This document shows, one piece after another, positions 1,949 through 28,655 of a stretch of 32,000 nt of DNA (positions within the stretch are counted from its first letter, which is position 1; each line of letters begins with the position of its first letter). The notes below the pieces were generated by a model that saw nothing but the letters and a program-made list of their open reading frames with translations, had not been told where the DNA came from and made no database searches. Position numbers and translations under genes: made by a program. Origin of the DNA: Wallemia ichthyophaga EXF-994 (lineage: Eukaryota > Fungi > Basidiomycota); the NCBI RefSeq assembly GCF_000400465.1, contig NW_008806300.1:1-32000 (forward strand), given 5' to 3'.

Positions 1949-1960
1949 TCGTCCATACAT
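1949..1960 (+). promoter_or_regulatory. Dispersed (G)TCGTCYATACAT motif of unknown function (representative copy)
   Basis: Related copies at +1987, +10062, +12842, -16625..16637 and -28557..28569; the last two are identical 13-mers. Confidence 0.5.
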
Positions 1961-2280
1961 TTATTTTAACGTCAATATATACAATATCGTCCTAACATAA
2001 AATTTTATAAGTTAAAACAAACTTAGCATAATCTAATATTATATTAAAATATATATTATAAAGGTAGCTTAATTACGAATTTATTTTATTTTTTTTGAAT
2101 TTCATTTATTATTTTTATTTTTTACTTTTAGGTAATTTTTTTAATTTCTATATGTTATTATTTTTATAATAGCAATTTTTTACGTTGTCATTTAAGTTGT
2201 TGTTTTTACAGCAATAATAGTATAATATTTATCTATTAAATTAGATATCTATATACTATTAGCTATTTTTTATTAAATTT

Positions 2281-2435
2281 ATGCGTTTACTAAAATCACA
2301 TCCATTATTAAGTTTAGTGAATAGTTACGTTGTTGATTCTCCACAACCAGCTAACATTAGTTACATGTGGAATTTTGGATCACTATTAGCAACTTGTCTT
2401 GGTTTACAATTAGTAACAGGTATCATCCTAGCTAT
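2281..2435 (+). pseudogene. cob: Orphan duplicate of cob exon 1, followed by a truncated intron 1
   Basis: [36 protein letters not shown], identical to 4090-4244, but its intron is broken by the fold-back at 3206/3207. Confidence 0.9.
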
Positions 2436-4089
2436 AATTTAGTGTGTAGCTATAAAATATATTCAATAGCTAGATATATATATACAAAGTTTTTAATGGT
2501 ACAATTTTATATTGTTATAATCCGTAAAAATTTGTACAATTAGCTAAATGTGAAACATTTTCAGAGACTATACAATACAATAATATGATATAGTCCGATA
2601 TTATTATATATTTAATAATATAAGTTCACATTATAATAAGAGTGTAGTTTTAGACAATAGTATTCTTCAGTTATTAGTTTTATTTAGTAATTTCGTTCCT
2701 CTCTCATTATTAAATAAAAATTATACAACCAACTCATATAGTAAATCATTTGATGATAAAGGTTGGTTTTTACTGGTTTAACTGATGGCGAAGGATATTT
2801 TACAGCTGATATTAACAAGTCTAATACTACTAAATTAGGATAGGACTAAGATTTGGTTTACTAATGCATATTCGTGATATTGAATTACTACTTTCTTTTT
2901 CTGAATATTTAGGAAATATTGGTTATGTTAGAGCTGATCATAATAGAAACCAGGCAGTGTTTAATGTTAGTTCTATTCAAGAACTAGTAATGGTTATTAA
3001 CCATTTTAACAGATATCCATTAGTTACATCTAAATTTCTAGCTTTTTATACTTTTAAATTAATTCATAATATTATTATCACTAAGCAGCATCTAAGTGTA
3101 TCTGGTTTTGTTTTAGTATGTTCTTATATTAACATTTTAAATAAACCGTTATATCCAAAAAACTTGGTGAATTAACTAATGCTTTTGGTTGTTTATATGA
3201 TGTTGTACAACATCATATAAACAACCAAAAGCATTAGTTAATTCACCAAGTTTTTTGGATATAACGGTTTATTTAAAATGTTAATATAAGAACATACTAA
3301 AACAAAACCAGATACACTTAGATGCTGCTTAGTGATAATAATATTATGAATTAATTTAAAAGTATAAAAAGCTAGAAATTTAGATGTAACTAATGGATAT
3401 CTGTTAAAATGGTTAATAACCATTACTAGTTCTTGAATAGAACTAACATTAAACACTGCCTGGTTTCTATTATGATCAGCTCTAACATAACCAATATTTC
3501 CTAAATATTCAGAAAAAGAAAGTAGTAATTCAATATCACGAATATGCATTAGTAAACCAAATCTTAGTCCTATCCTAATTTAGTAGTAACTAATTAACCA
3601 CTATTATAAAAATTTAATACCCCTCCCTAATATAATCCAATAACATAACTCTAAAAATAATTTATTATTTCTATTTATAATAAAACTAATACTTTTTTAT
3701 TCTTATATAATAATATATCTAATATATCTAATATATCACTAATATTTTATATATTATTCGTCCATACATTTATTTTAACGTCAATATATACAATATCGTC
3801 CTAACATAAAATTTTATAAGTTAAAACAAACTTAGCATAATCTAATATTATATTAAAATATATATTATAAAGGTAGCTTAATTACGAATTTATTTTATTT
3901 TTTTTGAATTTCATTTATTATTTTTATTTTTTACTTTTAGGTAATTTTTTTAATTTCTATATGTTATTATTTTTATAATAGCAATTTTTTACGTTGTCAT
4001 TTAAGTTGTTGTTTTTACAGCAATAATAGTATAATATTTATCTATTAAATTAGATATCTATATACTATTAGCTATTTTTTATTAAATTT

Positions 4090-4244
4090 ATGCGTTTACT
4101 AAAATCACATCCATTATTAAGTTTAGTGAATAGTTACGTTGTTGATTCTCCACAACCAGCTAACATTAGTTACATGTGGAATTTTGGATCACTATTAGCA
4201 ACTTGTCTTGGTTTACAATTAGTAACAGGTATCATCCTAGCTAT
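4090..4244 (+). CDS. cob: Apocytochrome b exon 1
   Basis: Cob N-terminus ending CTA GCT AT; joins G CAC TAC at 5518 to give AMHY. Confidence 0.95.
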
Positions 4245-5517
4245 AATTTAGTGTGTAGCTATAAAATATATTCAATAGCTAGATATATATATACAAAGTT
4301 TTTAATGGTACAATTTTATATTGTTATAATCCGTAAAAATTTGTACAATTAGCTAAATGTGAAACATTTTCAGAGACTATACAATACAATAATATGATAT
4401 AGTCCGATATTATTATATATTTAATAATATAAGTTCACATTATAATAAGAGTGTAGTTTTAGACAATAGTATTCTTCAGTTATTAGTTTTATTTAGTAAT
4501 TTCGTTCCTCTCTCATTATTAAATAAAAATTATACAACCAACTCATATAGTAAATCATTTGATGATAAAGGTTGGTTTTTACTGGTTTAACTGATGGCGA
4601 AGGATATTTTACAGCTGATATTAACAAGTCTAATACTACTAAATTAGGATAGGACTAAGATTTGGTTTACTAATGCATATTCGTGATATTGAATTACTAC
4701 TTTCTTTTTCTGAATATTTAGGAAATATTGGTTATGTTAGAGCTGATCATAATAGAAACCAGGCAGTGTTTAATGTTAGTTCTATTCAAGAACTAGTAAT
4801 GGTTATTAACCATTTTAACAGATATCCATTAGTTACATCTAAATTTCTAGCTTTTTATACTTTTAAATTAATTCATAATATTATTATCACTAAGCAGCAT
4901 CTAAGTGTATCTGGTTTTGTTTTAGTATGTTCTTATATTAACATTTTAAATAAACCGTTATATCCAAAAAACTTGGTGAATTAACTAATGCTTTTGGTTG
5001 TTTATATGATGTTGTACAACATCATATATCTTAGGTAAAGTAAATCCATTCTGGCTTCTTTGTAGGTGAAGGTTGTCTTACTTTTCGTAAACAATATAGA
5101 CCTCGGGTGTTAATTATGATATTTGGTTGATGGCTGAAATTGGTCAATTAACTAAAGACTTATATGTTTTAGAAGCTATTCGTGACCTATTAGGATTTGG
5201 TAAAATTTACCATGAAAATAAACGTGGCTTATCTAAAATTAGATTTGATTCATCAGAATCATTAACATCTTTTATCCAGTTTTTACATGAATATCCTCTA
5301 ACAGGATTCAAACGTAAACAATTTGGATTAAAGCATTCAAATTAATTACGGAAATGCCTAAATCTGTTGAAAGAGAAGCATTACTTTTGGATATTCTGGG
5401 TCAATTGTCAGGTCTTACTAAGTCTTAAATTTTACTTAGAATTATTATTATTATCTTTATTAATTTTTAATACCCCTTACTTATCATTTATCCTATCTTA
5501 TTATAATAGAACTAATG
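4245..5517 (+). mobile_element. cob intron 1, group I (after cob nt 155)
   Basis: Exon ends in U, intron ends in G; P1 GTAGCT pairs exon AGCTAT; P10 TAGTGT pairs GCACTA; core TTCAGAGACTA and GATATAGTCC near the 5' end. Confidence 0.92.
4570..5428 (+). pseudogene. Degenerate two-motif LAGLIDADG endonuclease in cob intron 1
   Basis: Motifs FTGLTDGEGYF (about 4578) and SGFFVGEGCLTF (about 5050) lie in frames broken by several frameshifts and stops; start approximate. Confidence 0.85.
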
Positions 5518-5755
5518 GCACTACACACCTAACGTAGACTTAGCATTCATTAGTGTAGAGCATATTATGAGAGATGTTAACTACGGTTGGTTACTAAGAT
5601 ACATGCATGCTAATGGTGCTTCTTTCTTCTTCATTTTTGTATACTTACACATTGGAAGAGGATTATACTACGGATCATACAGAGCTCCTAGAACACTTGT
5701 ATGGAGTATTGGAGTAATTATCTTCATCCTTATGATGGCTACAGCCTTCTTGGGT
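5518..5755 (+). CDS. cob: Apocytochrome b exon 2
   Basis: [10 protein letters not shown]...[16 protein letters not shown]...MATAFLG; cumulative length 393 nt. Confidence 0.96.
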
Positions 5756-6615: not shown

Positions 6616-7001
6616 CTGTTTTTGGCATAGTCATAGTTTTTATTATATAAATTTCAAAACCCCTCTAAGCAACTTACACAAGAAAATTAGAGTGTATAAC
6701 TAAAAACTATTAATACTTACAAAGTATTGAATCGTTTACATATATTTACGATTTGGCGATACTAGTGAATACGGTTAAAGATAAAAGTTATTTATCCAGA
6801 CCGTCGGTTTTGTGTAAAATCGCTACAGACTGGGTCACTAGTAGGTGTCTGAAATGACGCTTAATGTACAGTCGAGTTTCCGCATATTATATATATATGT
6901 TCAAGGCCCAGAATGACGTTTATTTATGTTAATAGCATGATTTACTGACTGGGTACAACTACTACTAATAATAACTTAAAATATTGGTAGAAGGGAAATT
7001 G
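5756..7001 (+). mobile_element. cob intron 2, group ID-type (cob393 site)
   Basis: IGS GCCCAA pairs exon TTGGGT; core GCTACAGACTGG and ATGTACAGTCG; terminal G at 7001. Confidence 0.93.
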
Positions 7002-7104
7002 TATGTTCTTCCTTATGGGCAGATGTCTCTATGGGGTGCTACAGTAATTACTAACTTACTTAGTGCGATCCCTTGGCTAGGAAGCCCATTAGTAGAATTC
7101 GTTT
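7002..7104 (+). CDS. cob: Apocytochrome b exon 3
   Basis: [34 protein letters not shown]; the 3' boundary may be off by 1 nt. Confidence 0.92.
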
Positions 7105-8003: not shown

Positions 8004-8222
8004 TTTTTATAACCTTATAATACCTTATACCCCTCCCGGAACGAATTATAAACTATTATATGCTAGAAATAAATTATGAATTATATAGTACATTAAGATG
8101 TAATAATCTATATAAAATTATAACTAGCAAATTTATTATAAATTTCAAAGAATATACATGTTTTCATTTAAAATGAATGAGATATTCTATTCTTGCATTA
8201 TATTATAACTTGCAAGACAATG
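7105..8222 (+). mobile_element. cob intron 3, group I (after about cob nt 496)
   Basis: Splicing GTT T to GG GGA GGC restores VWGGF; core TATGCTAG, CTAGCA, CAAAGAATA and GATATTCT lie after the ORF. Confidence 0.85.
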
Positions 8223-8482
8223 GGGGAGGCTTTAGTGTTAATAATGCTACTCTAAATAGATTCTTCAGTCTTCACTACTTATTACCATTTGTATTAGCCG
8301 CATTAGCAATTATGCATATGATGGCATTACATACACACGGTTCATCAAACCCAACAGGTGTAAGTGCTAACAGTGACAGATTAGCAATGCACCCATACTT
8401 CACGTTCAAAGACTTAGTGACTATTTTTCTATTCTTCTTAGTATTCTCACTATTTGTATTCTACGCACCTAATAAACTAGGT
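8223..8482 (+). CDS. cob: Apocytochrome b exon 4
   Basis: [22 protein letters not shown]...APNKLG; cumulative length 756 nt. Confidence 0.95.
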
Positions 8483-9969: not shown

Positions 9970-10208
9970 TATTTATAACCCTTTAAAACTTTTAATACCC
10001 CTCCCTGAATTATAATTATAAATTATAAAATTAAACCAATAATTACATATTTTTTTTAATGGTCATCCATACATTATATAATTAAGTAATAAAAAAATTA
10101 GTAAAAAAGTGTATATTTATGAAATAATATAAATTATCAAAAAATATAGGTAATATTGAAGAGTAATTTATTTACTTAAGAAGATTATTAAGGATATTAA
10201 TAATTGAG

Positions 10209-11333
10209 TTATTTGTATGAGTTTAAGCTTGGCTCAGCTTGAATACTATCTAATAGCTAGACATGCGAGTCGTACGAGGATAATATATAAATTATTCTAG
10301 TGGCGTGAAGGTGAGTAATGGTATAATTAGGACACCTAGACCCGTCTTAAATGGATGATAAGGGGAATTTTATTTTTATAGGATTCTTTGAAAGGGTTGT
10401 ACTTGGTTTAGGTTCTGTTATATTCTAAGTAGCTAGTTGGTAGGGTAACTGCTTACCAAGGCTATGATTAGTAGTCAGTCTGAAAGGATGTATGGCCACA
10501 GTGGGTAATAAACCCATCATGTTATATTTAGCATGCAGCAGTCGGTAAAATTGGTCAATGCTTGAAAAAGTGAACCAGCTAATTAGATTACGTATAATCA
10601 TCGTATACGTAGTAGGATATATTCATAATGAGAATCTATATCTGAGTAGTCCTTGACAATTCTGGTGCCAGCATCAGCGGTAATACCAGAAGGGCGAGTA
10701 TCAAGCATAATAAATAGGCGTAAAGGGATCGCAGACGGTTTTAATATTTCTTATATTTAGGAAACTTATTGAAACTAGAATCTAATGGGTGTTTTGAGCA
10801 CGTTGGGAGTAGGGGTAAAATCCGTTGAGACTCAAAAGACTACTAAAAGCGAAAGCACAAAACAATTAAAGATTGACGTTGAGGATCGAAAGCATGGGTA
10901 GCAAAAGAGATTAGAGACCTCTGATAGTCCATGCCGTAAACGATGTCTGTTCATATGTAGCAATTTTTCCGCTATATATTTAGTTAGCACATTAAACAGA
11001 CCGCCTGAACAGTACATTCCCAAGAATGAAAATCAAAAGTTTTAACCGCAGGCTAGTACACGGGGTGAAGCATGTTATTTAATTCGATAACCCGCGTATA
11101 ACCTTACTATCTCTTGTATATTTAGATTTTTATCTATTTACAGGTGTTGCATGGTTGTCGTCAGTTCGTGCTTAATAGTGTTTGGTTAAGTCCGCTAACG
11201 AACGCAATCCTTATGTTTAATTTATACATAAACAATGATTAGATTAACATCTAATTTTAAAGGAGTATGACTAATCATCATGACCCTTATGAGATAGGCT
11301 ATAGACGTGCCACAAAATTAATAACAATATCAT
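10209..11333 (+). rRNA. rns: Truncated 5' copy of small-subunit rRNA (1125-bp tandem duplicate)
   Basis: Matches 11334-12458; lacks the 3' domains; true 5' end approximate. Confidence 0.88.
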
Positions 11334-12787
11334 TTATTTGTATGAGTTTAAGCTTGGCTCAGCTTGAATACTATCTAATAGCTAGACATGCGAGTCGTAC
11401 GAGGATAATATATAAATTATTCTAGTGGCGTGAAGGTGAGTAATGGTATAATTAGGACACCTAGACCCGTCTTAAATGGATGATAAGGGGAATTTTATTT
11501 TTATAGGATTCTTTGAAAGGGTTGTACTTGGTTTAGGTTCTGTTATATTCTAAGTAGCTAGTTGGTAGGGTAACTGCTTACCAAGGCTATGATTAGTAGT
11601 CAGTCTGAAAGGATGTATGGCCACAGTGGGTAATAAACCCATCATGTTATATTTAGCATGCAGCAGTCGGTAAAATTGGTCAATGCTTGAAAAAGTGAAC
11701 CAGCTAATTAGATTACGTATAATCATCGTATACGTAGTAGGATATATTCATAATGAGAATCTATATCTGAGTAGTCCTTGACAATTCTGGTGCCAGCATC
11801 AGCGGTAATACCAGAAGGGCGAGTATCAAGCATAATAAATAGGCGTAAAGGGATCGCAGACGGTTTTAATATTTCTTATATTTAGGAAACTTATTGAAAC
11901 TAGAATCTAATGGGTGTTTTGAGCACGTTGGGAGTAGGGGTAAAATCCGTTGAGACTCAAAAGACTACTAAAAGCGAAAGCACAAAACAATTAAAGATTG
12001 ACGTTGAGGATCGAAAGCATGGGTAGCAAAAGAGATTAGAGACCTCTGATAGTCCATGCCGTAAACGATGTCTGTTCATATGTAGCAATTTTTCCGCTAT
12101 ATATTTAGTTAGCACATTAAACAGACCGCCTGAACAGTACATTCCCAAGAATGAAAATCAAAAGTTTTAACCGCAGGCTAGTACACGGGGTGAAGCATGT
12201 TATTTAATTCGATAACCCGCGTATAACCTTACTATCTCTTGTATATTTAGATTTTTATCTATTTACAGGTGTTGCATGGTTGTCGTCAGTTCGTGCTTAA
12301 TAGTGTTTGGTTAAGTCCGCTAACGAACGCAATCCTTATGTTTAATTTATACATAAACAATGATTAGATTAACATCTAATTTTAAAGGAGTATGACTAAT
12401 CATCATGACCCTTATGAGATAGGCTATAGACGTGCCACAAAATTAATAACAATATCATAGCAAATTTATATTTTTTAATAGGAAAAAAGAGCTAATGATC
12501 AAATATTAATGAGTATGAATTATATGCTGCAATTCGCATATATGAAATAGGAATCCCGAGTAATCGTTTATCAGGATCGGAACGGTGAAACGAACTCTAG
12601 CCTGGGCATAAACCGCTCGTCACAAGCGTTAAGATGATTTATAATGAATATAAATAAAAACCTCAAATAATTTAAGATTTTAAAAAAGTCTTATTTTATT
12701 AAGGATAATCAGTTTGTAGAGTTGTGATCATCAAGATGCTTGAAGTCGAAACTGGTCACGGTAGGGGAACCTGCCGTGGTATCATTA
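11334..12787 (+). rRNA. rns: Mitochondrial small-subunit rRNA
   Basis: TTGGCTCAG, GTGCCAGCATCAGCGGTAATAC, GCATGGTTGTCGTCAG, ACCGCTCGTCAC, GAAGTCGAAAC...GGGGAACCTGC; ends approximate. Confidence 0.95.
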
Positions 12788-12907
12788 AAATTAATTAAAC
12801 CCCTTCAATATTATTATTAATTTTTAATTTTATATAAACAAGTCGTTCCTACATTAATTTATTTTATTTCAATATTATAGGTAACAAATAATTTTTTCTA
12901 CTTTATT

Positions 12908-13472: not shown

Positions 13473-14294
13473 TCTATTACTAGAACGATTTTTAACACTA
13501 TTATGTCTAAATCAATCGTTTTATTTAAATCTACTGTTCAATCATTTTCAATAGCTATTGAAAGAGCTAAACCGATTTTCATTAAAAATATCACTACACC
13601 TTGTACCGCTATTGTACCATATGGTGTTATGGGGAATTCTAATGGAATCAAATTAAGTCAATATGCTAGAGATATTACTGTACTAACTGAAACTATGCGT
13701 GATCAAATTATTGGTCACATCTTGGGAGATGGTTCACTAACTAAATCATATACTTCTAAGAATGCATACTTTGTTTTCACACAGACATCTAAGCGTTTTT
13801 TCTATATTATGCATATTTTTTCAATTTTAGGTCCACTTTGCCTAAAATTACCAACATTAGGTTGTAGTTTACGTAAAGGAATTAGAAGTTACTATCTTCA
13901 AATTCACTCACGTAGTTACCCATTTTTTAGTAATCTGTACAATTTATTTTACTTCGATGGTATTAATCCAAATCCCGTAAAAAGAATTCCTACAGATCTT
14001 CTATTTTACTTAAACCCTAATGTTCTGGCAGTATGGTGCATGGATGATGGAAATTTCTCTCCAAGCGGTTTCTATCTTCACACTAATAATTTTAGTTTTA
14101 ATGATGTATATAAATTAGCTGCTATGCTTCACTATGTTTTTGAATTAACTGTGAATGTTCAAAGATTTGATGGAAAACCTGTTCTTTATGTTCCAGCTAA
14201 GCAATTACCTAAATTTTATGCTTTAGTTAAGCCTTATATTTTGCCTGAGTTTGCCTACAAGTTTAGACACCAAGTATTGACACAGTATGATTAA
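13473..14294 (+). CDS. Intact LAGLIDADG endonuclease (I-SceI-like type) in frame with cox2 exon 1
   Basis: IIGHILGDGSL and LAVWCMDDG motifs, uninterrupted. Confidence 0.9.
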   Translation, partial: SITRTIFNTIMSKSIVLFKSTVQSFSIAIERAKPIFIKNITTPCTAIVPYGVMGNSNGIKLSQYARDITVLTETMRDQIIGHILGDGSLTKSYTSKNAYFVFTQTSKRFFYIMHIFSILGPLCLKLPTLGCSLRKGIRSYYLQIHSRSYPFFSNLYNLFYFDGINPNPVKRIPTDLLFYLNPNVLAVWCMDDGNFSPSGFYLHTNNFSFNDVYKLAAMLHYVFELTVNVQRFDGKPVLYVPAKQLPKFYALVKPYILPEFAYKFRHQVLTQYD

Positions 14295-14556: not shown

Positions 14557-14838
14557 GAGGTAATTTCACCATCTATGACAATCAAGGTTAACGGTGCTCA
14601 GTGGTACTGGTCTTACGAGTACTCTGATTACTTGAATGAAGAAGGAGAATCCCTGGAATTCGATAGTTACATGGTACCTGAATCTGATTTAGAATTAGGT
14701 CAATTAAGACTACTTGATGTTGACGCACCAGTTGTAGTACCTGTTGATACTCATATCAGATTTATTGTTACAGCTAATGACGTTATCCATGACTTTGCTG
14801 TTCCATCTCTAGGATTAAAAATCGATGCAACACCCGGT
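14557..14838 (+). CDS. cox2: Cytochrome c oxidase subunit 2 exon 2
   Basis: [35 protein letters not shown]. Confidence 0.96.
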
Positions 14839-15012
14839 TAATAAACGGCCGGTTAAAAATTTACTAAAATGCTAATACGTTACTAATAATATGATTATTA
14901 CTTTAAAAAAGTAAAAATATAATCATTTATCTAATTAGCAAATATTTTTTATATTTCAGAGGCTATTTTAAGAAATAGTCCATTTAAATTATCAAATAAT
15001 TTATAAAATTTG
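14839..15012 (+). mobile_element. cox2 intron 2, 174-nt ORF-less group I intron
   Basis: P1 GCCGG pairs exon CCGGT; P10 TAAACG pairs CGTTTA; P7 GGCTA/TAGTC; ATGCTAAT/ATTAGCA pairing; terminal G. Confidence 0.92.
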
Positions 15013-16376: not shown

Positions 16377-16492
16377 TAACTAAATTAACCCTTTTATATA
16401 AATTTAATACCCCTTCAGAATCATAATAACTATAATAACCATAATAAAGGTATTATAAAATTTTATTTTTTATATAATTAGTTATAGGTAAT

Positions 16493-16576: not shown

Positions 16577-16767
16577 ATAAAATATTAGTAAACTCACATT
16601 ATTTTATAATTAAATAATAATAATATGTATAGACGACTTAATTTAAATAATAACATGTATAAATAACTAAACTACAATATACATAATTTATATGGTGATA
16701 TTTATATTTAATATTAATAATTAAATATATTTTTTGTTATAGATTATAATATTTAATATTTATGATA

Positions 16768-16962: not shown

Positions 16963-17730
16963 ATGCACAACTTATTTATGATCAACTCTCCATTAGAGCA
17001 ATTCGGTGTTGTCAGTCTATTGGAGTTTAGACTACCATTTAATGGTACAGTTTTAAGTTTAACTAACTTAGGACTATATTCTATCATCATTGTTGTTTTA
17101 ATCTTAGGTGGACATTTTCTATCTACTAACAACAAAGGTCTAGTAAGTAGCCCATGGTCTCTTACATTTGAAAGCCTATATACTACTCTACAATCAATGG
17201 TTAAAGACCAAATTGGATCAAGATACGAATCATACTTACCTTTTGTATACGGATTATTTATTTTCATCCTAGTTGCTAACGTTAATGGTAACATCCCTTA
17301 CGGATTTACTATTACTACATCTGCTATTGTTTCATTAGGATTCAGTTGTATGATTTTCTCATCTGTTACTATTCTTGGATTATTCAGACATGGTATCCAC
17401 TTCTTCAGTTACTTTGTTCCTGCTGGTACACCATTAGCATTAGTACCATTACTAGTATTAATCGAATTAATTTCATACTTTGCTAGAGCTGTATCATTAG
17501 GAGTACGTCTATTTGCTAACATGGTAGCTGGACATATTTTACTAAAAATTCTAGCATCATTCTTATTTGGACTATTTAACTCATCATTATTAGTAGCTAC
17601 ATTAACTCTAATCCCATTTGCATTATTTGTTGCATTAATTGGACTAGAATTAGCAGTAAGTGTTATCCAAGCATACGTATTCACTATTTTAACTTGTTCT
17701 TACATTAAAGATGCTCTAGATCTTCACTAG
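16963..17730 (+). CDS. atp6: ATP synthase subunit a
   Basis: SPLEQF, RAVSLGVRLFANMVAGH, ELAVSVIQAYVF. Confidence 0.98.
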   Translation: MHNLFMINSPLEQFGVVSLLEFRLPFNGTVLSLTNLGLYSIIIVVLILGGHFLSTNNKGLVSSPWSLTFESLYTTLQSMVKDQIGSRYESYLPFVYGLFIFILVANVNGNIPYGFTITTSAIVSLGFSCMIFSSVTILGLFRHGIHFFSYFVPAGTPLALVPLLVLIELISYFARAVSLGVRLFANMVAGHILLKILASFLFGLFNSSLLVATLTLIPFALFVALIGLELAVSVIQAYVFTILTCSYIKDALDLH

Positions 17731-17882
17731 TTAAATAATAGTAATATTATACTAATATATAATAACCCTTTTATAATTAATTAAACCCCTTTTTATATAA
17801 TATATAATTATTAGATAATTAAAGGTAATCTGGTTATTTAATTTTTTTAAGTTATTTTATTTAACACTTATATTCTACCAAG

Positions 17883-17953
17883 GCATGTGTCGTATAATGG
17901 CAATATAGTGGTCTTCCATATCATTGACGTGGGTTCGATTCCCACCACATGTA
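17883..17953 (+). tRNA. trnG: tRNA-Gly(UCC)
   Basis: Acceptor GCATGTG/CACATGT; loop CT TCC AT. Confidence 0.92.
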
Positions 17954-18029
17954 TTTTTTGTAATATAAATTAATTCTATTATTATTTTAAAAAATTTAAT
18001 TAATTATTTTACATTGTGACTTTTTAGTA

Positions 18030-19221
18030 ATGCTATTATTAGCTTTAATTATTTTAGTTGTTGTTTTAGCAACAAGTTCCTCAGAAAACAGATCTACTGT
18101 TTCATTTGTTTACAATCCGGTTAAATTAATTGTATTATCATTAATTTTATCAATTGTATTAATTATTTCCGCTATTTCATCTTGCCCATTAGATTTAACA
18201 GTTTCTCTCTTTAGTGGACTATATCAAACATCATATGTAACATTAGCATTTGATTTACTATTATTTGTTAGTTCAGCATTAGTTTTAACATCATGGCCTC
18301 AATTTAAATCGAATAAATACTTATCTCATTTTAATAATTTTAAAATGAACGATTATAGTCTTATTGTTTTATTTTCTATTATTGGTGGATCATTCTTATT
18401 AGCTTCTAATGATTTAATTAGTTTATACTTAGCTCTTGAATTACAATCATTTGGTGTTTATGTTCTTACTACATTATATAGAGACTCAGAATCTGCTACT
18501 TCTGGTGGTATGAAATACTTCTTTTTAGGAGCTCTTTCTTCAGCCTTAATTTTATTAGGGTCAGCTATTTTATATACTTATTTAGGATTAACACAATTCG
18601 AATCTATTTATATTTTAGCAAGTGTTCCTACTAATACTATCGATCAAATTGGACTAAATTTTGGTTTATTACTTATTCTTATTGGATTATTATTTAAAGT
18701 TGCAGCTGCACCATTCCATTCATATGCTCCAGATGTATATGACGGAGCACCAACTCAAGTAACAATTTGGTTAACAACTATTCCAAAACTAAGTTTATTT
18801 GGTTTATTATTAGTTCTACAACCATTAGGTACATTATTAAGTAGTTCAGTAGAATTATTTAATTTAGTTCCATGGACAGATTTATTATTATTATCTACAT
18901 TATTATCATTTATTGTCGGAAGTGTTATTGGTTTAGGTCAATATAGAATTAAAAGATTACTTGCTTATAGTACTATTGGACATGTCGGATTTATTTTATT
19001 AGGTCTAGCAAGTCATAGTACACAATCATTAGAATCAACATTCTTTTACTTAGGTCAATATACATTCACTACTATTAATGTATTCCTTATCTTAATTGCA
19101 TTTGGTATTGCTATTAATGGTAAAAAATCTAATACTAATTATGATATTCAATTTATTAAAGATTTAACAGGACAATTCCTACATAACCCAGCATTAAGTT
19201 TAAGTTTAAGTTTATGTTTAT
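18030..19221 (+). pseudogene. nad2: 3'-truncated nad2 copy 1, cut by the fold-back junction
   Basis: Matches the first 397 codons of 25117-26637. Confidence 0.92.
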
Positions 19222-20444
19222 CCTAAAAGTGGAGGTACTCCTGCCATAGAGAATAAACATAAACTTAAACTTAAACTTAATGCTGGGTTATGTAGGAATT
19301 GTCCTGTTAAATCTTTAATAAATTGAATATCATAATTAGTATTAGATTTTTTACCATTAATAGCAATACCAAATGCAATTAAGATAAGGAATACATTAAT
19401 AGTAGTGAATGTATATTGACCTAAGTAAAAGAATGTTGATTCTAATGATTGTGTACTATGACTTGCTAGACCTAATAAAATAAATCCGACATGTCCAATA
19501 GTACTATAAGCAAGTAATCTTTTAATTCTATATTGACCTAAACCAATAACACTTCCGACAATAAATGATAATAATGTAGATAATAATAATAAATCTGTCC
19601 ATGGAACTAAATTAAATAATTCTACTGAACTACTTAATAATGTACCTAATGGTTGTAGAACTAATAATAAACCAAATAAACTTAGTTTTGGAATAGTTGT
19701 TAACCAAATTGTTACTTGAGTTGGTGCTCCGTCATATACATCTGGAGCATATGAATGGAATGGTGCAGCTGCAACTTTAAATAATAATCCAATAAGAATA
19801 AGTAATAAACCAAAATTTAGTCCAATTTGATCGATAGTATTAGCAGGAACACTTGCTAAAATATAAATAGATTCGAATTGTGTTAATCCTAAATAAGTAT
19901 ATAAAATAGCTGACCCTAATAAAATTAAGGCTGAAGAAAGAGCTCCTAAAAAGAAGTATTTCATACCACCAGAAGTAGCAGATTCTGAGTCTCTATATAA
20001 TGTAGTAAGAACATAAACACCAAATGATTGTAATTCAAGAGCTAAGTATAAACTAATTAAATCATTAGAAGCTAATAAGAATGATCCACCAATAATAGAA
20101 AATAAAACAATAAGACTATAATCGTTCATTTTAAAATTATTAAAATGAGATAAGTATTTATTCGATTTAAATTGAGGCCATGATGTTAAAACTAATGCTG
20201 AACTAACAAATAATAGTAAAGCAAATGCTAATGTTACATATGATGTTTGATATAGTCCACTAAAGAGAGAAACTGTTAAATCTAATGGGCAAGATGAAAT
20301 AGCGGAAATAATTAATACAATTGATAAAATTAATGATAATACAATTAATTTAACCGGATTGTAAACAAATGAAACAGTAGATCTGTTTTCTGAGGAACTT
20401 GTTGCTAAAACAACAACTAAAATAATTAAAGCTAATAATAGCAT
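19220..20444 (-). pseudogene. nad2: Inverted 3'-truncated nad2 copy
   Basis: Reverse complement of nad2 through GVPPLLG; carries D75A and T201A relative to the plus-strand copies. Confidence 0.92.
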
Positions 20445-20520
20445 TACTAAAAAGTCACAATGTAAAATAATTAATTAAATTTTTTAAAATAATAATAGAA
20501 TTAATTTATATTACAAAAAA

Positions 20521-20591
20521 TACATGTGGTGGGAATCGAACCCACGTCAATGATATGGAAGACCACTATATTGCCATTATACGACACATGC
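20521..20591 (-). tRNA. trnG: tRNA-Gly(UCC), inverted copy
   Basis: Reverse complement of 17883-17953. Confidence 0.9.
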
Positions 20592-20743
20592 CTTGGTAGA
20601 ATATAAGTGTTAAATAAAATAACTTAAAAAAATTAAATAACCAGATTACCTTTAATTATCTAATAATTATATATTATATAAAAAGGGGTTTAATTAATTA
20701 TAAAAGGGTTATTATATATTAGTATAATATTACTATTATTTAA

Positions 20744-21197
20744 CTAGTGAAGATCTAGAGCATCTTTAATGTAAGAACAAGTTAAAATAGTGAATACGTA
20801 TGCTTGGATAACACTTACTGCTAATTCTAGTCCAATTAATGCAACAAATAATGCAAATGGGATTAGAGTTAATGTAGCTACTAATAATGATGAGTTAAAT
20901 AGTCCAAATAAGAATGATGCTAGAATTTTTAGTAAAATATGTCCAGCTACCATGTTAGCAAATAGACGTACTCCTAATGATACAGCTCTAGCAAAGTATG
21001 AAATTAATTCGATTAATACTAGTAATGGTACTAATGCTAATGGTGTACCAGCAGGAACAAAGTAACTGAAGAAGTGGATACCATGTCTGAATAATCCAAG
21101 AATAGTAACAGATGAGAAAATCATACAACTGAATCCTAATGAAACAATAGCAGATGTAGTAATAGTAAATCCGTAAGGGATGTTACCATTAACGTTA
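20744..21197 (-). pseudogene. atp6: Inverted 3' part of atp6
   Basis: Reverse complement of 17277-17730. Confidence 0.92.
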
Positions 21198-21279
21198 ATT
21201 TATATGGTGATATTTATATTTAATATTAATAATTAAATATATTTTTTGTTATAGATTATAATATTTAATATTTATGATA

Positions 21280-21351
21280 TGATCCGGAAAGGAATTGAAC
21301 CTAATACCTTACAGTTATCGGCTGTACGTTCTACCATTAAACTACCAGATC
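21280..21351 (-). tRNA. trnI: tRNA-Ile(GAU), duplicate
   Basis: Copy of 16768-16839 at offset 4512. Confidence 0.88.
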
Positions 21352-21474
21352 TTATATAATTACGATAATCGAAAAATTTAGCAAATAATCAATAATTTAC
21401 CTTTAGAAAAAATAAAAAATAAAAATTAAAGGTAAAAGTTAAAGTTTGAATTTTATAATAATTTATTAATAAAT

Positions 21475-22242
21475 ATGCACAACTTATTTATGATCAACTC
21501 TCCATTAGAGCAATTCGGTGTTGTCAGTCTATTGGAGTTTAGACTACCATTTAATGGTACAGTTTTAAGTTTAACTAACTTAGGACTATATTCTATCATC
21601 ATTGTTGTTTTAATCTTAGGTGGACATTTTCTATCTACTAACAACAAAGGTCTAGTAAGTAGCCCATGGTCTCTTACATTTGAAAGCCTATATACTACTC
21701 TACAATCAATGGTTAAAGACCAAATTGGATCAAGATACGAATCATACTTACCTTTTGTATACGGATTATTTATTTTCATCCTAGTTGCTAACGTTAATGG
21801 TAACATCCCTTACGGATTTACTATTACTACATCTGCTATTGTTTCATTAGGATTCAGTTGTATGATTTTCTCATCTGTTACTATTCTTGGATTATTCAGA
21901 CATGGTATCCACTTCTTCAGTTACTTTGTTCCTGCTGGTACACCATTAGCATTAGTACCATTACTAGTATTAATCGAATTAATTTCATACTTTGCTAGAG
22001 CTGTATCATTAGGAGTACGTCTATTTGCTAACATGGTAGCTGGACATATTTTACTAAAAATTCTAGCATCATTCTTATTTGGACTATTTAACTCATCATT
22101 ATTAGTAGCTACATTAACTCTAATCCCATTTGCATTATTTGTTGCATTAATTGGACTAGAATTAGCAGTAAGTGTTATCCAAGCATACGTATTCACTATT
22201 TTAACTTGTTCTTACATTAAAGATGCTCTAGATCTTCACTAG
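21475..22242 (+). CDS. atp6: ATP synthase subunit a, duplicate
   Basis: Same 255-aa translation as 16963-17730. Confidence 0.93.
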   Translation: MHNLFMINSPLEQFGVVSLLEFRLPFNGTVLSLTNLGLYSIIIVVLILGGHFLSTNNKGLVSSPWSLTFESLYTTLQSMVKDQIGSRYESYLPFVYGLFIFILVANVNGNIPYGFTITTSAIVSLGFSCMIFSSVTILGLFRHGIHFFSYFVPAGTPLALVPLLVLIELISYFARAVSLGVRLFANMVAGHILLKILASFLFGLFNSSLLVATLTLIPFALFVALIGLELAVSVIQAYVFTILTCSYIKDALDLH

Positions 22243-22394
22243 TTAAATAATAGTAATATTATACTAATATATAATAACCCTTTTATAATTAATTAAACCC
22301 CTTTTTATATAATATATAATTATTAGATAATTAAAGGTAATCTGGTTATTTAATTTTTTTAAGTTATTTTATTTAACACTTATATTCTACCAAG

Positions 22395-22465
22395 GCATGT
22401 GTCGTATAATGGCAATATAGTGGTCTTCCATATCATTGACGTGGGTTCGATTCCCACCACATGTA
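22395..22465 (+). tRNA. trnG: tRNA-Gly(UCC), duplicate
   Basis: Copy at offset 4512. Confidence 0.9.
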
Positions 22466-22541
22466 TTTTTTGTAATATAAATTAATTCTATTATTATTTT
22501 AAAAAATTTAATTAATTATTTTACATTGTGACTTTTTAGTA

Positions 22542-23733
22542 ATGCTATTATTAGCTTTAATTATTTTAGTTGTTGTTTTAGCAACAAGTTCCTCAGAAAA
22601 CAGATCTACTGTTTCATTTGTTTACAATCCGGTTAAATTAATTGTATTATCATTAATTTTATCAATTGTATTAATTATTTCCGCTATTTCATCTTGCCCA
22701 TTAGATTTAACAGTTTCTCTCTTTAGTGGACTATATCAAACATCATATGTAACATTAGCATTTGATTTACTATTATTTGTTAGTTCAGCATTAGTTTTAA
22801 CATCATGGCCTCAATTTAAATCGAATAAATACTTATCTCATTTTAATAATTTTAAAATGAACGATTATAGTCTTATTGTTTTATTTTCTATTATTGGTGG
22901 ATCATTCTTATTAGCTTCTAATGATTTAATTAGTTTATACTTAGCTCTTGAATTACAATCATTTGGTGTTTATGTTCTTACTACATTATATAGAGACTCA
23001 GAATCTGCTACTTCTGGTGGTATGAAATACTTCTTTTTAGGAGCTCTTTCTTCAGCCTTAATTTTATTAGGGTCAGCTATTTTATATACTTATTTAGGAT
23101 TAACACAATTCGAATCTATTTATATTTTAGCAAGTGTTCCTACTAATACTATCGATCAAATTGGACTAAATTTTGGTTTATTACTTATTCTTATTGGATT
23201 ATTATTTAAAGTTGCAGCTGCACCATTCCATTCATATGCTCCAGATGTATATGACGGAGCACCAACTCAAGTAACAATTTGGTTAACAACTATTCCAAAA
23301 CTAAGTTTATTTGGTTTATTATTAGTTCTACAACCATTAGGTACATTATTAAGTAGTTCAGTAGAATTATTTAATTTAGTTCCATGGACAGATTTATTAT
23401 TATTATCTACATTATTATCATTTATTGTCGGAAGTGTTATTGGTTTAGGTCAATATAGAATTAAAAGATTACTTGCTTATAGTACTATTGGACATGTCGG
23501 ATTTATTTTATTAGGTCTAGCAAGTCATAGTACACAATCATTAGAATCAACATTCTTTTACTTAGGTCAATATACATTCACTACTATTAATGTATTCCTT
23601 ATCTTAATTGCATTTGGTATTGCTATTAATGGTAAAAAATCTAATACTAATTATGATATTCAATTTATTAAAGATTTAACAGGACAATTCCTACATAACC
23701 CAGCATTAAGTTTAAGTTTAAGTTTATGTTTAT
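22542..23733 (+). pseudogene. nad2: 3'-truncated nad2 copy 2
   Basis: Same truncation junction as 18030-19221. Confidence 0.92.
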
Positions 23734-24851
23734 CCTAAAAGTGGAGGTACTCCTGCCATAGAGAATAAACATAAACTTAAACTTAAACTTAATGCTGGGT
23801 TATGTAGGAATTGTCCTGTTAAATCTTTAATAAATTGAATATCATAATTAGTATTAGATTTTTTACCATTAATAGCAATACCAAATGCAATTAAGATAAG
23901 GAATACATTAATAGTAGTGAATGTATATTGACCTAAGTAAAAGAATGTTGATTCTAATGATTGTGTACTATGACTTGCTAGACCTAATAAAATAAATCCG
24001 ACATGTCCAATAGTACTATAAGCAAGTAATCTTTTAATTCTATATTGACCTAAACCAATAACACTTCCGACAATAAATGATAATAATGTAGATAATAATA
24101 ATAAATCTGTCCATGGAACTAAATTAAATAATTCTACTGAACTACTTAATAATGTACCTAATGGTTGTAGAACTAATAATAAACCAAATAAACTTAGTTT
24201 TGGAATAGTTGTTAACCAAATTGTTACTTGAGTTGGTGCTCCGTCATATACATCTGGAGCATATGAATGGAATGGTGCAGCTGCAACTTTAAATAATAAT
24301 CCAATAAGAATAAGTAATAAACCAAAATTTAGTCCAATTTGATCGATAGTATTAGCAGGAACACTTGCTAAAATATAAATAGATTCGAATTGTGTTAATC
24401 CTAAATAAGTATATAAAATAGCTGACCCTAATAAAATTAAGGCTGAAGAAAGAGCTCCTAAAAAGAAGTATTTCATACCACCAGAAGTAGCAGATTCTGA
24501 GTCTCTATATAATGTAGTAAGAACATAAACACCAAATGATTGTAATTCAAGAGCTAAGTATAAACTAATTAAATCATTAGAAGCTAATAAGAATGATCCA
24601 CCAATAATAGAAAATAAAACAATAAGACTATAATCGTTCATTTTAAAATTATTAAAATGAGATAAGTATTTATTCGATTTAAATTGAGGCCATGATGTTA
24701 AAACTAATGCTGAACTAACAAATAATAGTAAAGCAAATGCTAATGTTACATATGATGTTTGATATAGTCCACTAAAGAGAGAAACTGTTAAATCTAATGG
24801 GCAAGATGAAATAGCGGAAATAATTAATACAATTGATAAAATTAATGATAA
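23732..24851 (-). pseudogene. nad2: Inverted internal nad2 fragment
   Basis: Copy of 19220-20339, including both variant bases. Confidence 0.9.
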
Positions 24852-24969
24852 ACCCTTTTATAATTAATTAAACCCCTTTTTATATAATATATAATTATTA
24901 GATAATTAAAGGTAATCTGGTTATTTAATTTTTTTAAGTTATTTTATTTAACACTTATATTCTACCAAG

Positions 24970-25040
24970 GCATGTGTCGTATAATGGCAATATAGTGGTC
25001 TTCCATATCATTGACGTGGGTTCGATTCCCACCACATGTA
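24970..25040 (+). tRNA. trnG: tRNA-Gly(UCC), copy before the full-length nad2
   Basis: Copy at offset 7087. Confidence 0.9.
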
Positions 25041-25116
25041 TTTTTTGTAATATAAATTAATTCTATTATTATTTTAAAAAATTTAATTAATTATTTTACA
25101 TTGTGACTTTTTAGTA

Positions 25117-26637
25117 ATGCTATTATTAGCTTTAATTATTTTAGTTGTTGTTTTAGCAACAAGTTCCTCAGAAAACAGATCTACTGTTTCATTTGTTTAC
25201 AATCCGGTTAAATTAATTGTATTATCATTAATTTTATCAATTGTATTAATTATTTCCGCTATTTCATCTTGCCCATTAGATTTAACAGTTTCTCTCTTTA
25301 GTGGACTATATCAAACATCATATGTAACATTAGCATTTGATTTACTATTATTTGTTAGTTCAGCATTAGTTTTAACATCATGGCCTCAATTTAAATCGAA
25401 TAAATACTTATCTCATTTTAATAATTTTAAAATGAACGATTATAGTCTTATTGTTTTATTTTCTATTATTGGTGGATCATTCTTATTAGCTTCTAATGAT
25501 TTAATTAGTTTATACTTAGCTCTTGAATTACAATCATTTGGTGTTTATGTTCTTACTACATTATATAGAGACTCAGAATCTGCTACTTCTGGTGGTATGA
25601 AATACTTCTTTTTAGGAGCTCTTTCTTCAGCCTTAATTTTATTAGGGTCAGCTATTTTATATACTTATTTAGGATTAACACAATTCGAATCTATTTATAT
25701 TTTAGCAAGTGTTCCTACTAATACTATCGATCAAATTGGACTAAATTTTGGTTTATTACTTATTCTTATTGGATTATTATTTAAAGTTGCAGCTGCACCA
25801 TTCCATTCATATGCTCCAGATGTATATGACGGAGCACCAACTCAAGTAACAATTTGGTTAACAACTATTCCAAAACTAAGTTTATTTGGTTTATTATTAG
25901 TTCTACAACCATTAGGTACATTATTAAGTAGTTCAGTAGAATTATTTAATTTAGTTCCATGGACAGATTTATTATTATTATCTACATTATTATCATTTAT
26001 TGTCGGAAGTGTTATTGGTTTAGGTCAATATAGAATTAAAAGATTACTTGCTTATAGTACTATTGGACATGTCGGATTTATTTTATTAGGTCTAGCAAGT
26101 CATAGTACACAATCATTAGAATCAACATTCTTTTACTTAGGTCAATATACATTCACTACTATTAATGTATTCCTTATCTTAATTGCATTTGGTATTGCTA
26201 TTAATGGTAAAAAATCTAATACTAATTATGATATTCAATTTATTAAAGATTTAACAGGACAATTCCTACATAACCCAGCATTAAGTTTAAGTTTAAGTTT
26301 ATGTTTATTCTCTATGGCAGGAGTACCTCCACTTTTAGGATTCTTTGGAAAACAAGTAATTCTACAAGCATCTTTATATTCTGGATATAACTGGTTAGCC
26401 TTAGTAGGTATTGTTACAAGTGTAATTAGTGCATATTATTATCTAAAAATTGTAAGAACACTATTCTTTGAATCAAACAATTCAGTTGATAATTATAATG
26501 ATAATATCGTAGAAATTAATTCAGTACATTCATTTACAATTTCATTATTAACAATTTCATTATTGGTTTATATTATTAATCCATCATTAGTTCTGAATAG
26601 TATGCATCTACTAGGTTTAAGTTTATATAATATTTAG
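25117..26637 (+). CDS. nad2: NADH dehydrogenase subunit 2, full length
   Basis: 506 aa; [48 protein letters not shown]. Confidence 0.97.
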
Positions 26638-26639
26638 AT

Positions 26640-27023
26640 ATGAACTCATTAACATTACTTTTTATTGTAGTACCAGTTTTAATTGGTGTACTATTATTAC
26701 TTAATTTATTACTTGCTGTTCACAAACCCGACGCTGAGAAAGTAACACCATATGAGTGTGGATTCAGTCCAGTTGAAGGTCAAACAAGAACACCATTCAC
26801 AATTCAATACTATTTAGTGGGAATTTTATTCCTAGTATTTGATCTAGAAATTTTATTATTCTTCCCATTATCAGTTAGTTTATACCAAGTATCTAGTTAT
26901 GGATTTACTATTGCTGTATTATTCTTCTCCGTACTTACTATTGGATTCATTTACGAATTAAGTAGAAATGTATTACACTTCACTGATCAAAGATCTGCCT
27001 TTGCTTCAGCAGTAAGAAGATAA
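26640..27023 (+). CDS. nad3: NADH dehydrogenase subunit 3
   Basis: [18 protein letters not shown]; starts 2 nt after the nad2 stop. Confidence 0.97.
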
Positions 27024-27139
27024 TATACTATTTATATCAATAATTTTTAATACCCCTCCCTACATAAGATTATAGGTAATTCAATATATTTTTAAGTATA
27101 TGTATAAAATTGGCTTATTTTTATAATTTATCTATAATA

Positions 27140-27210
27140 GGGCGCATAGCTTAGTGGTAAAGCGAACTGCTTTTAACAGTTTGATGAGTGTTCGATTCGC
27201 TCTGTGCCTA
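27140..27210 (+). tRNA. trnK: tRNA-Lys(UUU)
   Basis: Acceptor GGGCGCA/TGTGCCT; loop CT TTT AA. Confidence 0.93.
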
Positions 27211-27361
27211 AATATAATATAACACAAAATATTACTATCTTTTAAGAATAAAATTATAATAATATTTATGTACAAATTAGTTATTTTTATTTTTATTTAG
27301 ATTATTAAAAATAATGAACATAAAGGTAATTATTTAGTTATTTTTCTATATAGAATTTATT

Positions 27362-27449
27362 GGGTTCATGGCAGAGCGGTCTATTGCATTCGTCTTGAAA
27401 ACGAAAGCTATCTAATCGATAGCCGTAGGTTCAAATCCTACTGAGCCCG
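27362..27449 (+). tRNA. trnS: tRNA-Ser(UGA)
   Basis: Acceptor GGGTTCA/TGAGCCC; loop CT TGA AA; long variable arm. Confidence 0.93.
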
Positions 27450-27519
27450 TTTTTAAAAATTTTAAAAATTATATAAATTTAATAATAAGAAAATGTGTAA
27501 TTATATTTTACAATTTATT

Positions 27520-27590
27520 GCTGTAGTAGCTCAATGGTAGAGCGCGTTGCTGTTAACAACAAGACCTTGGTTCGATTCCATGCTACGGCT
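27520..27590 (+). tRNA. trnN: tRNA-Asn(GUU)
   Basis: Acceptor GCTGTAG/CTACGGC; loop CT GTT AA. Confidence 0.92.
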
Positions 27591-27719
27591 GGGTTTATTT
27601 GAGAGACAATAAATCATTAGAGTGTCCAAAACTCTATCCTTCTCCTTAGTGTATCCTGTATTATCTTACAGGAATTAAATGATGAAAATCATTCTTTTTA
27701 TATATATTATTTTTTAACA

Positions 27720-28340
27720 ATGAACTTATTTCTTCTTGATTTATTATCTGCTTTAGCAATGATCTCAGGTGTAATGGTTATTACATCTAAAAGTCCAGTT
27801 AGTTCTGTTTTATTCTTGGTTAGTGTATTTGTTAACTCAGCCTGTTACTTAGTAATTTTAGGTGTTGGATTTATCGGTTTATCATACTTAATTGTATACG
27901 TAGGAGCCATTGCGATCTTATTCTTATTCGTAATTATGATGCTTAATTTAAGATTAGTTGAATTAGTAGAAGTAGGGAAGGACTATACTAAGAATCTACC
28001 GTTAGGTCTATTAATTGGTTTAGTTCTATTCCTAGATTTAGTTAGTGTTATTCCATTCGATTTTACTAATGTAACATTCACTAATAAATTATTAGGTTAT
28101 TATACTAATATTCAAAATGTTCTATTATCAGGTGATTTCAGTGGACTAAATAATGAAACTGTTTATCAAACTTTCAACCTAAACGGTCTTGATAATGAAA
28201 TTGTTTCATTTACACACATCCAAGCTATTGGACAAGGTTTATATACTTATGGTTCAATTTGGCTAATTCTAGTAAGTTTCGTACTACTTTTAGGAATGGT
28301 AGGACCAATTGTTCTATGTCTAAAACCATCTGCTAAATAA
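27720..28340 (+). CDS. nad6: NADH dehydrogenase subunit 6
   Basis: ITSKSPVSSVLFL, YVGAIAILFLFVIMML, LLLGMVGPI. Confidence 0.96.
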   Translation: MNLFLLDLLSALAMISGVMVITSKSPVSSVLFLVSVFVNSACYLVILGVGFIGLSYLIVYVGAIAILFLFVIMMLNLRLVELVEVGKDYTKNLPLGLLIGLVLFLDLVSVIPFDFTNVTFTNKLLGYYTNIQNVLLSGDFSGLNNETVYQTFNLNGLDNEIVSFTHIQAIGQGLYTYGSIWLILVSFVLLLGMVGPIVLCLKPSAK

Positions 28341-28655
28341 GACACAATTATAAAATAAAATTATTAAACCCCTCCCAAATGTATATTATAATATAATAAA
28401 ATTTTATACAATTTATTTATATTATCCATTCATAAAATATAAAATAAAAATCTACTAAATAAAAATAAAATAAAGTATATATTATTAGAATTAATATGAA
28501 ATAGATAATAGTAAAATATATGTGTAATATAGTTTTATTTTTGTAATAATAATAATATGTATAGACGACAATCAAATTAATAAGTAATAATTTTATAAGT
28601 AATATATAATATGTAATATTTAGTATATAGTATATAATATATAGTATTAATATAA

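Follow-up and report, generated by a model that had tools for sequence, protein, structure and literature searches.

Spacers in the mitochondrial DNA of four lineages of the fungal genus Wallemia carry a short polar motif, with the 12-base core TC(G/A)TC-N3-TACAT and the fuller consensus (T)TA-TC(G/A)TC-N3-TACAT-(A/T), far more often than expected. Its copies are specific to spacers, are conserved across the genus, take their orientation from the genes around them, and lie either between the C-box of one gene, a 3' processing-type motif, and the promoter of the next, or in spacers where two transcription units converge. The motif was noted in the initial annotation of a 32-kb window of this DNA (the window being the whole stretch analyzed here), where it was offered as a terminator, a roadblock-protein site or a replication-related site. 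The first two of these fit the comparative evidence, while a polarity set by replication arms is disfavored by five flips of orientation within a single relative. Judging from its position, we tentatively read the motif as a cis-acting, orientation-dependent boundary element, that is a DNA-level terminator or roadblock, of Wallemia mitochondrial transcription units.

Four related lineages were compared, their sequences coded L followed by a number: strains of the window species (L001, L003-L017), a close relative of that species (L148, L149), Wallemia mellicola (L018, L150) and a more divergent lineage, here called relative C (L002, L022, L023, L151). Two independent assemblies of the window species, L001 and L003, lack the duplications found in the window and are colinear with its de-duplicated sequence at 99.6-99.8% identity; a non-redundant version of 20,984 nucleotides (nt), with the duplications removed, was therefore used for analysis. 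All six sites listed in the initial annotation were found at their positions and on their strands (Table 1), and the list had overlooked two further copies, at 3758 and 3796, which exist only because the block that holds them (3584-5028) is a 99.9% duplicate of 1775-3219. The order proposed for the plus-strand copies, gene, C-box, 12-mer and promoter, holds for nad4-cob, cob-rns and rns-trnV, where each copy lies 37-131 nt downstream of a C-box (TTAATACCCCTYCC) and ahead of a promoter-like nonamer, TAWAGGTAA. This C-box is found after each open reading frame (ORF) and after rns in the window, and the nonamer stands before most window genes. The minus-strand copies likewise lie where they had been placed, downstream of minus-strand transfer RNA (tRNA) genes in the convergent spacers trnL/trnI and nad6/trnQ.

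The signal emerges only once genes and duplicated blocks are removed, and a scan of the whole window allowing two mismatches gave 9 matches against 5.45 expected, which is not significant. Within the 3,539 nt of non-redundant window spacer (14.9% G+C), TCGTY is followed by [TA]ACAT within 1-3 nt in five of five cases, both strands counted. The pattern TCGT[CT]N1-3[TA]ACAT occurs there 5 times against 0.026 expected, the maximum in any of 5000 dinucleotide shuffles being 2. An unbiased Poisson-scored scan of 12-mers ranked the motif third, behind the C-box and AT repeats and ahead of the promoter nonamer, by a noisy statistic with a broad null, 5 of 20 shuffles reaching the motif's score; de novo word counting by raw count was uninformative for the motif. 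A position-weight matrix built from the relatives alone, a check suggested with the initial annotation, ranks 28568 on the minus strand (the copy at 28545-28569) first and 1949 on the plus strand second in the whole non-redundant window. Enrichment over background extends to the spacers of the relatives: those of L023 hold 22 copies on the plus strand, where 0.39 are expected, and 0 on the minus strand, where 0.06 are expected, and those of L018, L002 and L022 hold 3, 3 and 2, each against about 0.1-0.2. Genes, ribosomal RNAs (rRNAs) and introns, pooled to 50.5 kb, gave 3 loose matches against about 6.7 expected (1 sense against 3.7, 2 antisense against 3.0), and no sense-strand match was found in them with a stricter core. 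Introns in the pooled sequences lack the motif, though they are equally non-coding.

Conservation among relatives, which the initial annotation had called for, was found in all four lineages. The census came to 88 spacer copies across seven sequences, a figure that counts two loci twice (L018 and L150 overlap), and at least 17 types of spacer have the motif. Protein searches brought up only Wallemia-level relatives as close, the next-best matches falling to about 60-69% identity. Two contigs from the next-nearest lineages, L024 and L026 (Atp6 68-69% identical), have no motif, and the motif is therefore taken to be limited to Wallemia. A metagenome scan for tandem core pairs returned, among the matches listed, only unrelated satellites of 31-67% G+C.

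The motif was said always to follow the orientation of the upstream transcript; this is true of all six copies in the window and, genus-wide, of 75 of the 84 copies for which an upstream gene could be identified, scored against the nearest one, leaving nine exceptions. The rule has no power to discriminate where genes converge, since each strand of such a spacer has a transcript upstream. Same-strand spacers have co-oriented copies only, in 11 of 11 distinct types (nad4-cob, cob-rns, rns-trnV, cox2-nad1, trnL-nad4, atp6-trnG, nad6-rnl, trnW-rnl, rnl-atp9, atp9-orf and trnF-nad4L), for which the random probability is 2^-11. Along the 22 kb of L148 the copies run + - - - - - - - + + + + + - + + -, with five switches, each of them at a switch of gene strand. 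Eight of the nine exceptions lie in a single region of relative C, where a plus-strand unit (trnH) and a minus-strand unit (trnA-trnF) interpenetrate and each ends in co-oriented copies past the promoter of the other, an arrangement that is sensible only if the element acts in one direction.

The order of C-box, motif or motifs, and promoter is seen in every lineage, with TAWAGGTAA as the promoter at nad4-cob and nad6-rnl in W. mellicola and at rns-trnV in L023. At rnl-atp9 and trnW-rnl of L148 the motif is followed by the promoter, with no C-box after rnl or trnW; the nonamer at the 5' end of rnl is TAWAGGTAT and lies downstream of rnl's motif copy. All convergent spacers examined in the window species, L148 and W. 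mellicola have copies, except trnL/trnI of W. mellicola, and such copies have no downstream gene to serve (window 16625 and 28557; L018 5062 and 12131; L148 13399, 13420, 13675, 18512 and 18554; L150 1031). Where trnQ and nad6 converge in L148, each unit runs first into sense copies of its own, of which trnQ has two and nad6 one.

Gene order differs among the species, and the motif copies move with the unit ends. The copy 3' of the trnQ cluster is kept whether it faces nad6 (window, L148) or trnR(acg) (W. mellicola, L018 and L150), as is the copy 3' of the trnI/trnW unit whether it faces trnL or nad5. Between the window and W. mellicola the latter copy forms a perfect 20-nt island, TCGTCTATACATATTATTAT, in a spacer otherwise filled with indels. 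Eleven of 13 positions are kept in the nad4-cob copy, while at rns-trnV the presence of the motif is conserved and its exact position is not. The compact 26-kb genome of W. mellicola keeps single copies at unit ends. Within the window species, about 15 Logan contigs vary too little to gauge constraint.

As a polar boundary element read on the sense strand, the motif would stop or block the phage-type RNA polymerase of the mitochondrion once the enzyme is past the C-box, or past a unit's last tRNA, most likely through a bound sequence-specific protein and less likely through direct recognition by the polymerase. Transcripts antisense to oppositely oriented genes would thereby be avoided, as would transcripts running into the next promoter. 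We favor this reading because the motif follows the 3' processing site or last tRNA, faces the next promoter or opposing genes, and nearly always reads with the incoming polymerase; from this layout we infer action on DNA, binding of a protein and the ending of transcription at the motif. More guardedly, it may be a lineage-specific, one-way, 12-nt DNA terminator read by a protein outside the mTERF family or by the phage-type polymerase directly, and would then be the first cis-acting mitochondrial terminator described in fungi.

Several observations weigh against a boundary element. Fungi reportedly have no mTERF homologues, with termination mechanisms given as unknown, in a 2021 study of Candida albicans (PMC8677008), and the binding protein would therefore be of another kind. 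The core itself is degenerate: position 3 is G or A, and N3 is free. Many junctions that run from C-box to promoter in the window and W. mellicola have no copy (nad1-trnL, atp6-trnG, nad3-trnK and trnK-trnS), the cox2-nad1 spacer has 0 copies in the window against 9 in L023, and at nad6/trnQ of the window the trnQ-side copy is kept while the nad6 unit has only a decayed sense copy (28425-28438). One copy, at 1817 of L150, is antisense to both of its neighbors. The convergent trnH/trnF spacer of relative C has no copy within it, copies standing about 1 kb further on, past the opposing unit. Copy numbers vary widely between close relatives, from 6 or 7 (the 26-kb W. mellicola genome) through 17 (L148, 22 kb) and 22 (L023) to 34 (L151, 21 kb), and relative C has tandem arrays with 25-26-nt spacing, some L151 copies being parts of longer 25-26-nt tandem units, as well as longer shared units such as TCGTCCATSCATGGTCAGATTA. 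Variable copy number and tandem units are the behavior of selfish or slippage-generated repeats.

Folding gives no sign of a hairpin terminator or palindromic repeat. The motif core is not self-complementary, none of the six window copies, each folded in a 72-nt context, does better than shuffles (z -1.19 to +1.52), and an Rfam search of the spacers gave no family match. Any action of the motif would therefore be through its linear sequence, as with protein-bound terminators. Animal mTTF sites at the junctions of convergent blocs are such protein-bound mitochondrial terminators (PMC3778013), and algal MOC1 binds a short repeated motif, an octanucleotide, and limits antisense read-through (PMC3711419). 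Like these, the Wallemia motif is a short, specific, linear sequence at mitochondrial unit boundaries, convergent junctions included as for mTERF-type sites, and none of them comes with a hairpin. It has no sequence similarity to mTERF-type sites, and whereas these number one or two per animal genome and are bidirectional in vitro, the Wallemia motif is multi-copy, often tandem, and distributed in a way that suggests one-way action; membership of the mTERF system cannot be claimed for it.

Class II termination signals of T7 RNA polymerase, a single-subunit enzyme of the same family as the mitochondrial polymerases, consist of ATCTGTT and a U-run, and are linear, orientation-dependent, hairpin-independent and factor-independent. 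The Wallemia motif is also linear and polar and begins ATCGTC before A/T-rich sequence, but T7 signals have another sequence and are not tandemly arrayed, and the class was rejected on the core, ATCGTCC/ATCATCT and not ATCTGTT. In nuclear ribosomal DNA (rDNA), the terminators (Sal-box/TTF-I in mammals, Reb1 in yeasts) are co-oriented arrays of protein sites past a highly transcribed unit, and serve as polar terminators and fork barriers. Wallemia copies between rRNA genes or atp9 and the next promoter are arranged like them, although the rDNA terminators belong to another compartment and polymerase and have another sequence. TTF-1 is mentioned in PMC3778013.

The motif might instead work at the level of RNA, a reading we consider unlikely. 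Lying in the transcribed 3' trailer as UCGUCCAUACAU, it would be a binding or cleavage signal for an RNA-binding protein or nuclease that trims or degrades read-through RNA, and the polymerase would not be stopped. That the motif is co-oriented with the upstream transcript and kept out of mature RNAs fits this as well as it fits an element acting on DNA, and the unit boundaries of Candida albicans are set mainly post-transcriptionally, by the mtEXO RNase complex (PMC8677008). Short linear RNA motifs also serve 3' processing in fungal mitochondria, the C-rich motif of Schizosaccharomyces pombe (PMC3185421) among them, and the 12-mer resembles that motif in being short, linear, downstream of genes and on the sense strand. 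The window has a C-rich motif of this kind too, its C-box, which stands within about 20-60 nt of the end of nearly every ORF and of rns and marks the 3' end of the mature RNA, so that a second signal in the discarded trailer has no obvious use. Unlike the C-box, the 12-mer lies further downstream, occurs at some junctions only, is not C-rich and is sometimes multi-copy; in the window it was not found after nad1, atp6, nad3 or cox2, and it does follow tRNA-only units. A fungal 3' processing motif of the C-rich or dodecamer type would be expected a few tens of nt past nearly every ORF, setting the mature 3' end, and the 12-mer lies beyond the C-box. Placement just before promoters and tandem arrays at 25-26 nt are more typical of DNA-bound factors, and no structure accompanies the motif.

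Equally improbable is a selfish or neutral repeat family, short and either dispersed or tandem, that has the motif as its conserved core, spreads through spacers by slippage, gene conversion or transposition and serves no host function. Copy number scales with spacer length and changes fast, positions within spacers turn over, relative C has its arrays and longer units, and the 25 nt shared identically by the two minus-strand copies of the window suggest copy-and-paste. Such a repeat, however, would obey no rule of position or orientation. Here copy number and position vary, while orientation and boundary placement follow a rule, and polarity in all the same-strand types, together with switches that track the genes, is unexpected of freely inserting repeats. 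Also against it are the single copies that the most compact genome retains at unit ends, the perfect cross-species island at the trnI/trnW copy and the introns devoid of the motif. Repeats known from fungal mitochondrial DNA (Saccharomyces GC clusters, Neurospora PstI palindromes and double-hairpin elements) are G+C-rich palindromes or hairpins that occur in both orientations. The Wallemia motif is like them in being near-confined to non-coding mitochondrial DNA, lineage-specific and variable in copy number between close relatives, and unlike them in being polar, non-palindromic and without structure.

A role in replication or recombination, as an origin or iteron array, a fork barrier, or a polar motif following the replication arms, has a small probability. 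The direct-repeat arrays do resemble iterons, and animal mTERF-type terminator sites double as replication pause sites (PMC3778013), so that one roadblock protein could serve both ends. Against this, the motif occupies its many spacer types with an orientation that tracks gene strand, and a replication-arm motif would switch at most twice; Ter-, KOPS- or Chi-like motifs were rejected on the five switches of L148. No motif copy sits at a duplication breakpoint of the window. That the motif is a promoter element, either activating the next TAWAGGTAA promoter from upstream or itself an alternative promoter, is most improbable: among 64 copies whose downstream gene is known, 52 point the same way as that gene, and same-strand spacers and a divergent spacer of relative C have copies upstream of a co-oriented promoter (22-71 nt in the window; atp6 and rnl in L151), but in seven convergent spacers in four lineages neither a gene nor a promoter of matching orientation follows the copies, the best conserved ones included, the motif stands anywhere from 22 to more than 800 nt from the promoter, most promoters lack a copy, and the motif bears no resemblance to the yeast nonamer ATATAAGTA, whose role is filled by TATAGGTAA, a sequence one position away from it.

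Table 1. Motif copies and neighboring signals in the window
Feature	Sequence	Position	Strand	Context
Motif copy	TCGTCCATACAT	1949-1960	+	nad4-cob spacer, 131 nt past the nad4 C-box
Motif copy	TCGTCCTAACAT	1987-1998	+	Second in tandem with the 1949 copy (38-nt spacing); cob promoter-like nonamer 61 nt further on
Redundant copies of the 1949 and 1987 sites		3758-3769, 3796-3807	+	Within duplicated block 3584-5028
Weak motif copy	GTCATCCATACAT	10062-10074	+	cob-rns spacer, between C-box 9992-10005 and nonamer 10145-10153
Motif copy	GTCGTTCCTACAT	12842-12854	+	rns-trnV spacer, between C-box 12795-12806 and nonamer 12876-12884
Motif copy	GTCGTCTATACAT	16625-16637	-	131 nt downstream of trnI(-), convergent spacer with trnL(+)
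Decayed tandem partner	TTATTTATACAT	16655-16666	-	Upstream of the 16625 copy; aligns with the first of two L148 TCATCTATACAT copies and with W. mellicola TCGTCTATACAT
Probable decayed motif copy (low confidence)	TCCATTCATAAAAT	28425-28438	+	Past the nad6 C-box; alignable with the intact copy on the nad6 side in L148, TCATTCATACAT (13675-13686)
Motif copy with extension	GTCGTCTATACAT + ATTATTATTATT	28545-28569 (core 28557-28569)	-	130 nt downstream of trnQ(-), convergent spacer with nad6(+)
C-box	TTAATACCCCTCCC	1805-1818	+	After nad4; 3' processing-type motif; similar boxes at 9992-10005 (cob), 12795-12806 (rns) and 28364-28376 (nad6)
Promoter-like nonamer	TAAAGGTAG	2059-2067	+	Before cob; conserved in W. 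mellicola as TATAGGTAG; matching nonamers at 10145-10153 (rns) and 12876-12884 (trnV)

Several of the window copies can be followed individually into the relatives. The 1949 copy has an orthologue in W. mellicola (2291-2302 of L018, 3675 of L150), and position 1993 of the 1987 copy, which falls in the variable N3, is T or A depending on the strain. Two copies score low, that at 10062 (G to A) and that at 12842 (TCGTT), and variants like them are genuine members elsewhere, an identical TCATCCATACAT standing at 5354 of L023 and TCATCTATACAT being the main form in L148. No cleanly alignable counterpart of the 10062 copy exists in W. mellicola, where a degenerate ATCGTGTTTACAT stands. The 12842 copy aligns with GTCATCTATACAT of L148, and L023 has 9 copies in this rns-trnV spacer. 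A conserved 3' extension, ATTATTATTAT, makes the 16625 copy a 24-nt stretch (16614-16637, minus strand) aligned in three lineages, and the 25 nt at 28545-28569 are identical to 16613-16637.

The window itself is fungal-type mitochondrial DNA, with an A+T content of 72% and reading frames without internal TGA. Its genes run trnS(gct) on the minus strand, nad4, cob (with introns), rns, trnV, cox2 (with introns), nad1, trnL, trnI (minus strand), atp6, trnG, nad2, nad3, trnK, trnS, trnN and nad6, followed by a minus-strand block of trnQ-M-Y-T-E-M-R, a tRNA-like gene and nad5. Clusters of the window proteins contain members named Wallemia ichthyophaga and W. mellicola, and Atp6 of the window shares 96% identity with proteins named as W. 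ichthyophaga and 97% with a W. mellicola-type genome; the DNA is placed firmly at the level of the genus, in Wallemia (Wallemiomycetes, Basidiomycota). Direct and inverted duplications of 100% identity lie at 3220-5028, 11334-12458, 19222-26308 and 31006-32000, and the block 3584-5028 is not present in L003. Perfect palindromes, that is self-reverse-complementary blocks, are centered near 3206, 19237 and 23749; the palindromes and identical tandem or dispersed duplications (2825-3588, 17277-21197, 22647-24851, 10209-12458 and 29077-30071 / 31006-32000) cut through cob, rns, nad2 and nad5. Because independent assemblies of the same species lack them, they are either assembly or fold-back artefacts or rearranged mitochondrial DNA molecules.

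Other features were encountered along the way. A promoter-like nonamer abuts the first base of trnL(taa) in three lineages (window 16483-16491, L023 9094-9102, L150 9431-9439), and the primary transcript would therefore begin almost at the mature tRNA 5' end. The long spacers of relative C have a G-poor, CT-rich sense strand, and minisatellites built from AAAAGGTAAAG units form arrays like the promoter nonamer at 14837-14974 and 18524-18556 of L151 and 2862-2916 of L022. A fragment of a plasmid-type DNA polymerase B (Pfam DNA_pol_B_2) lies at 8068-8538 of L148, and also at 2667-3083 of L149, in a 1.8-kb trnF-nad4L spacer that in L148 has three motif copies and three orphan C-boxes as well. L148 has two trnI(gat) genes, one beside trnW/trnP (6892-6965, minus strand) and one between trnL and atp6 (18347-18418, plus strand), and a trnI-like sequence stands beside trnW in the W. 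mellicola contigs L019 and L020. The tRNA-like gene of the window, at 29630-29701 on the minus strand between trnR(tct) and nad5, was overlooked by ARAGORN, and its sole Rfam match is sub-threshold, to a model of the tRNA clan (32 bits, E = 7e-5); it is possibly a trnC of unusual structure. Three independent Logan contigs (L013, L014, L017) share an exact start base, window 27596 onward, 6 nt past the 3' end of trnN, which could mean RNA-derived assemblies with tRNA-punctuated 5' ends or a shared k-mer break. Among public protein records, XP_017304359.1, annotated as an uncharacterized protein of the psyllid Diaphorina citri, groups in the 90%-identity cluster of Wallemia Nad5, and TIA68075.1, a Nad5 labelled W. 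ichthyophaga, is 99.9% identical to Nad5 of W. mellicola; contamination or mislabelling is likely in both.

The literature searched contained no description of the motif or of an equivalent, and no paper on the organization of the Wallemia mitochondrial genome. Judged from sequence, the motif would be of a kind already known elsewhere, the sequence-specific boundary or terminator sites of organelles, in a kingdom where none are known, with its function as a candidate. It offers a concrete, testable sequence in a culturable genus, with single copies in a compact 26-kb genome and arrays in the relatives. If it is a selfish repeat, its polarity would itself require explanation, and if it is a true terminator, polar sequence-specific termination would have arisen in mitochondria independently of the mTERF family.

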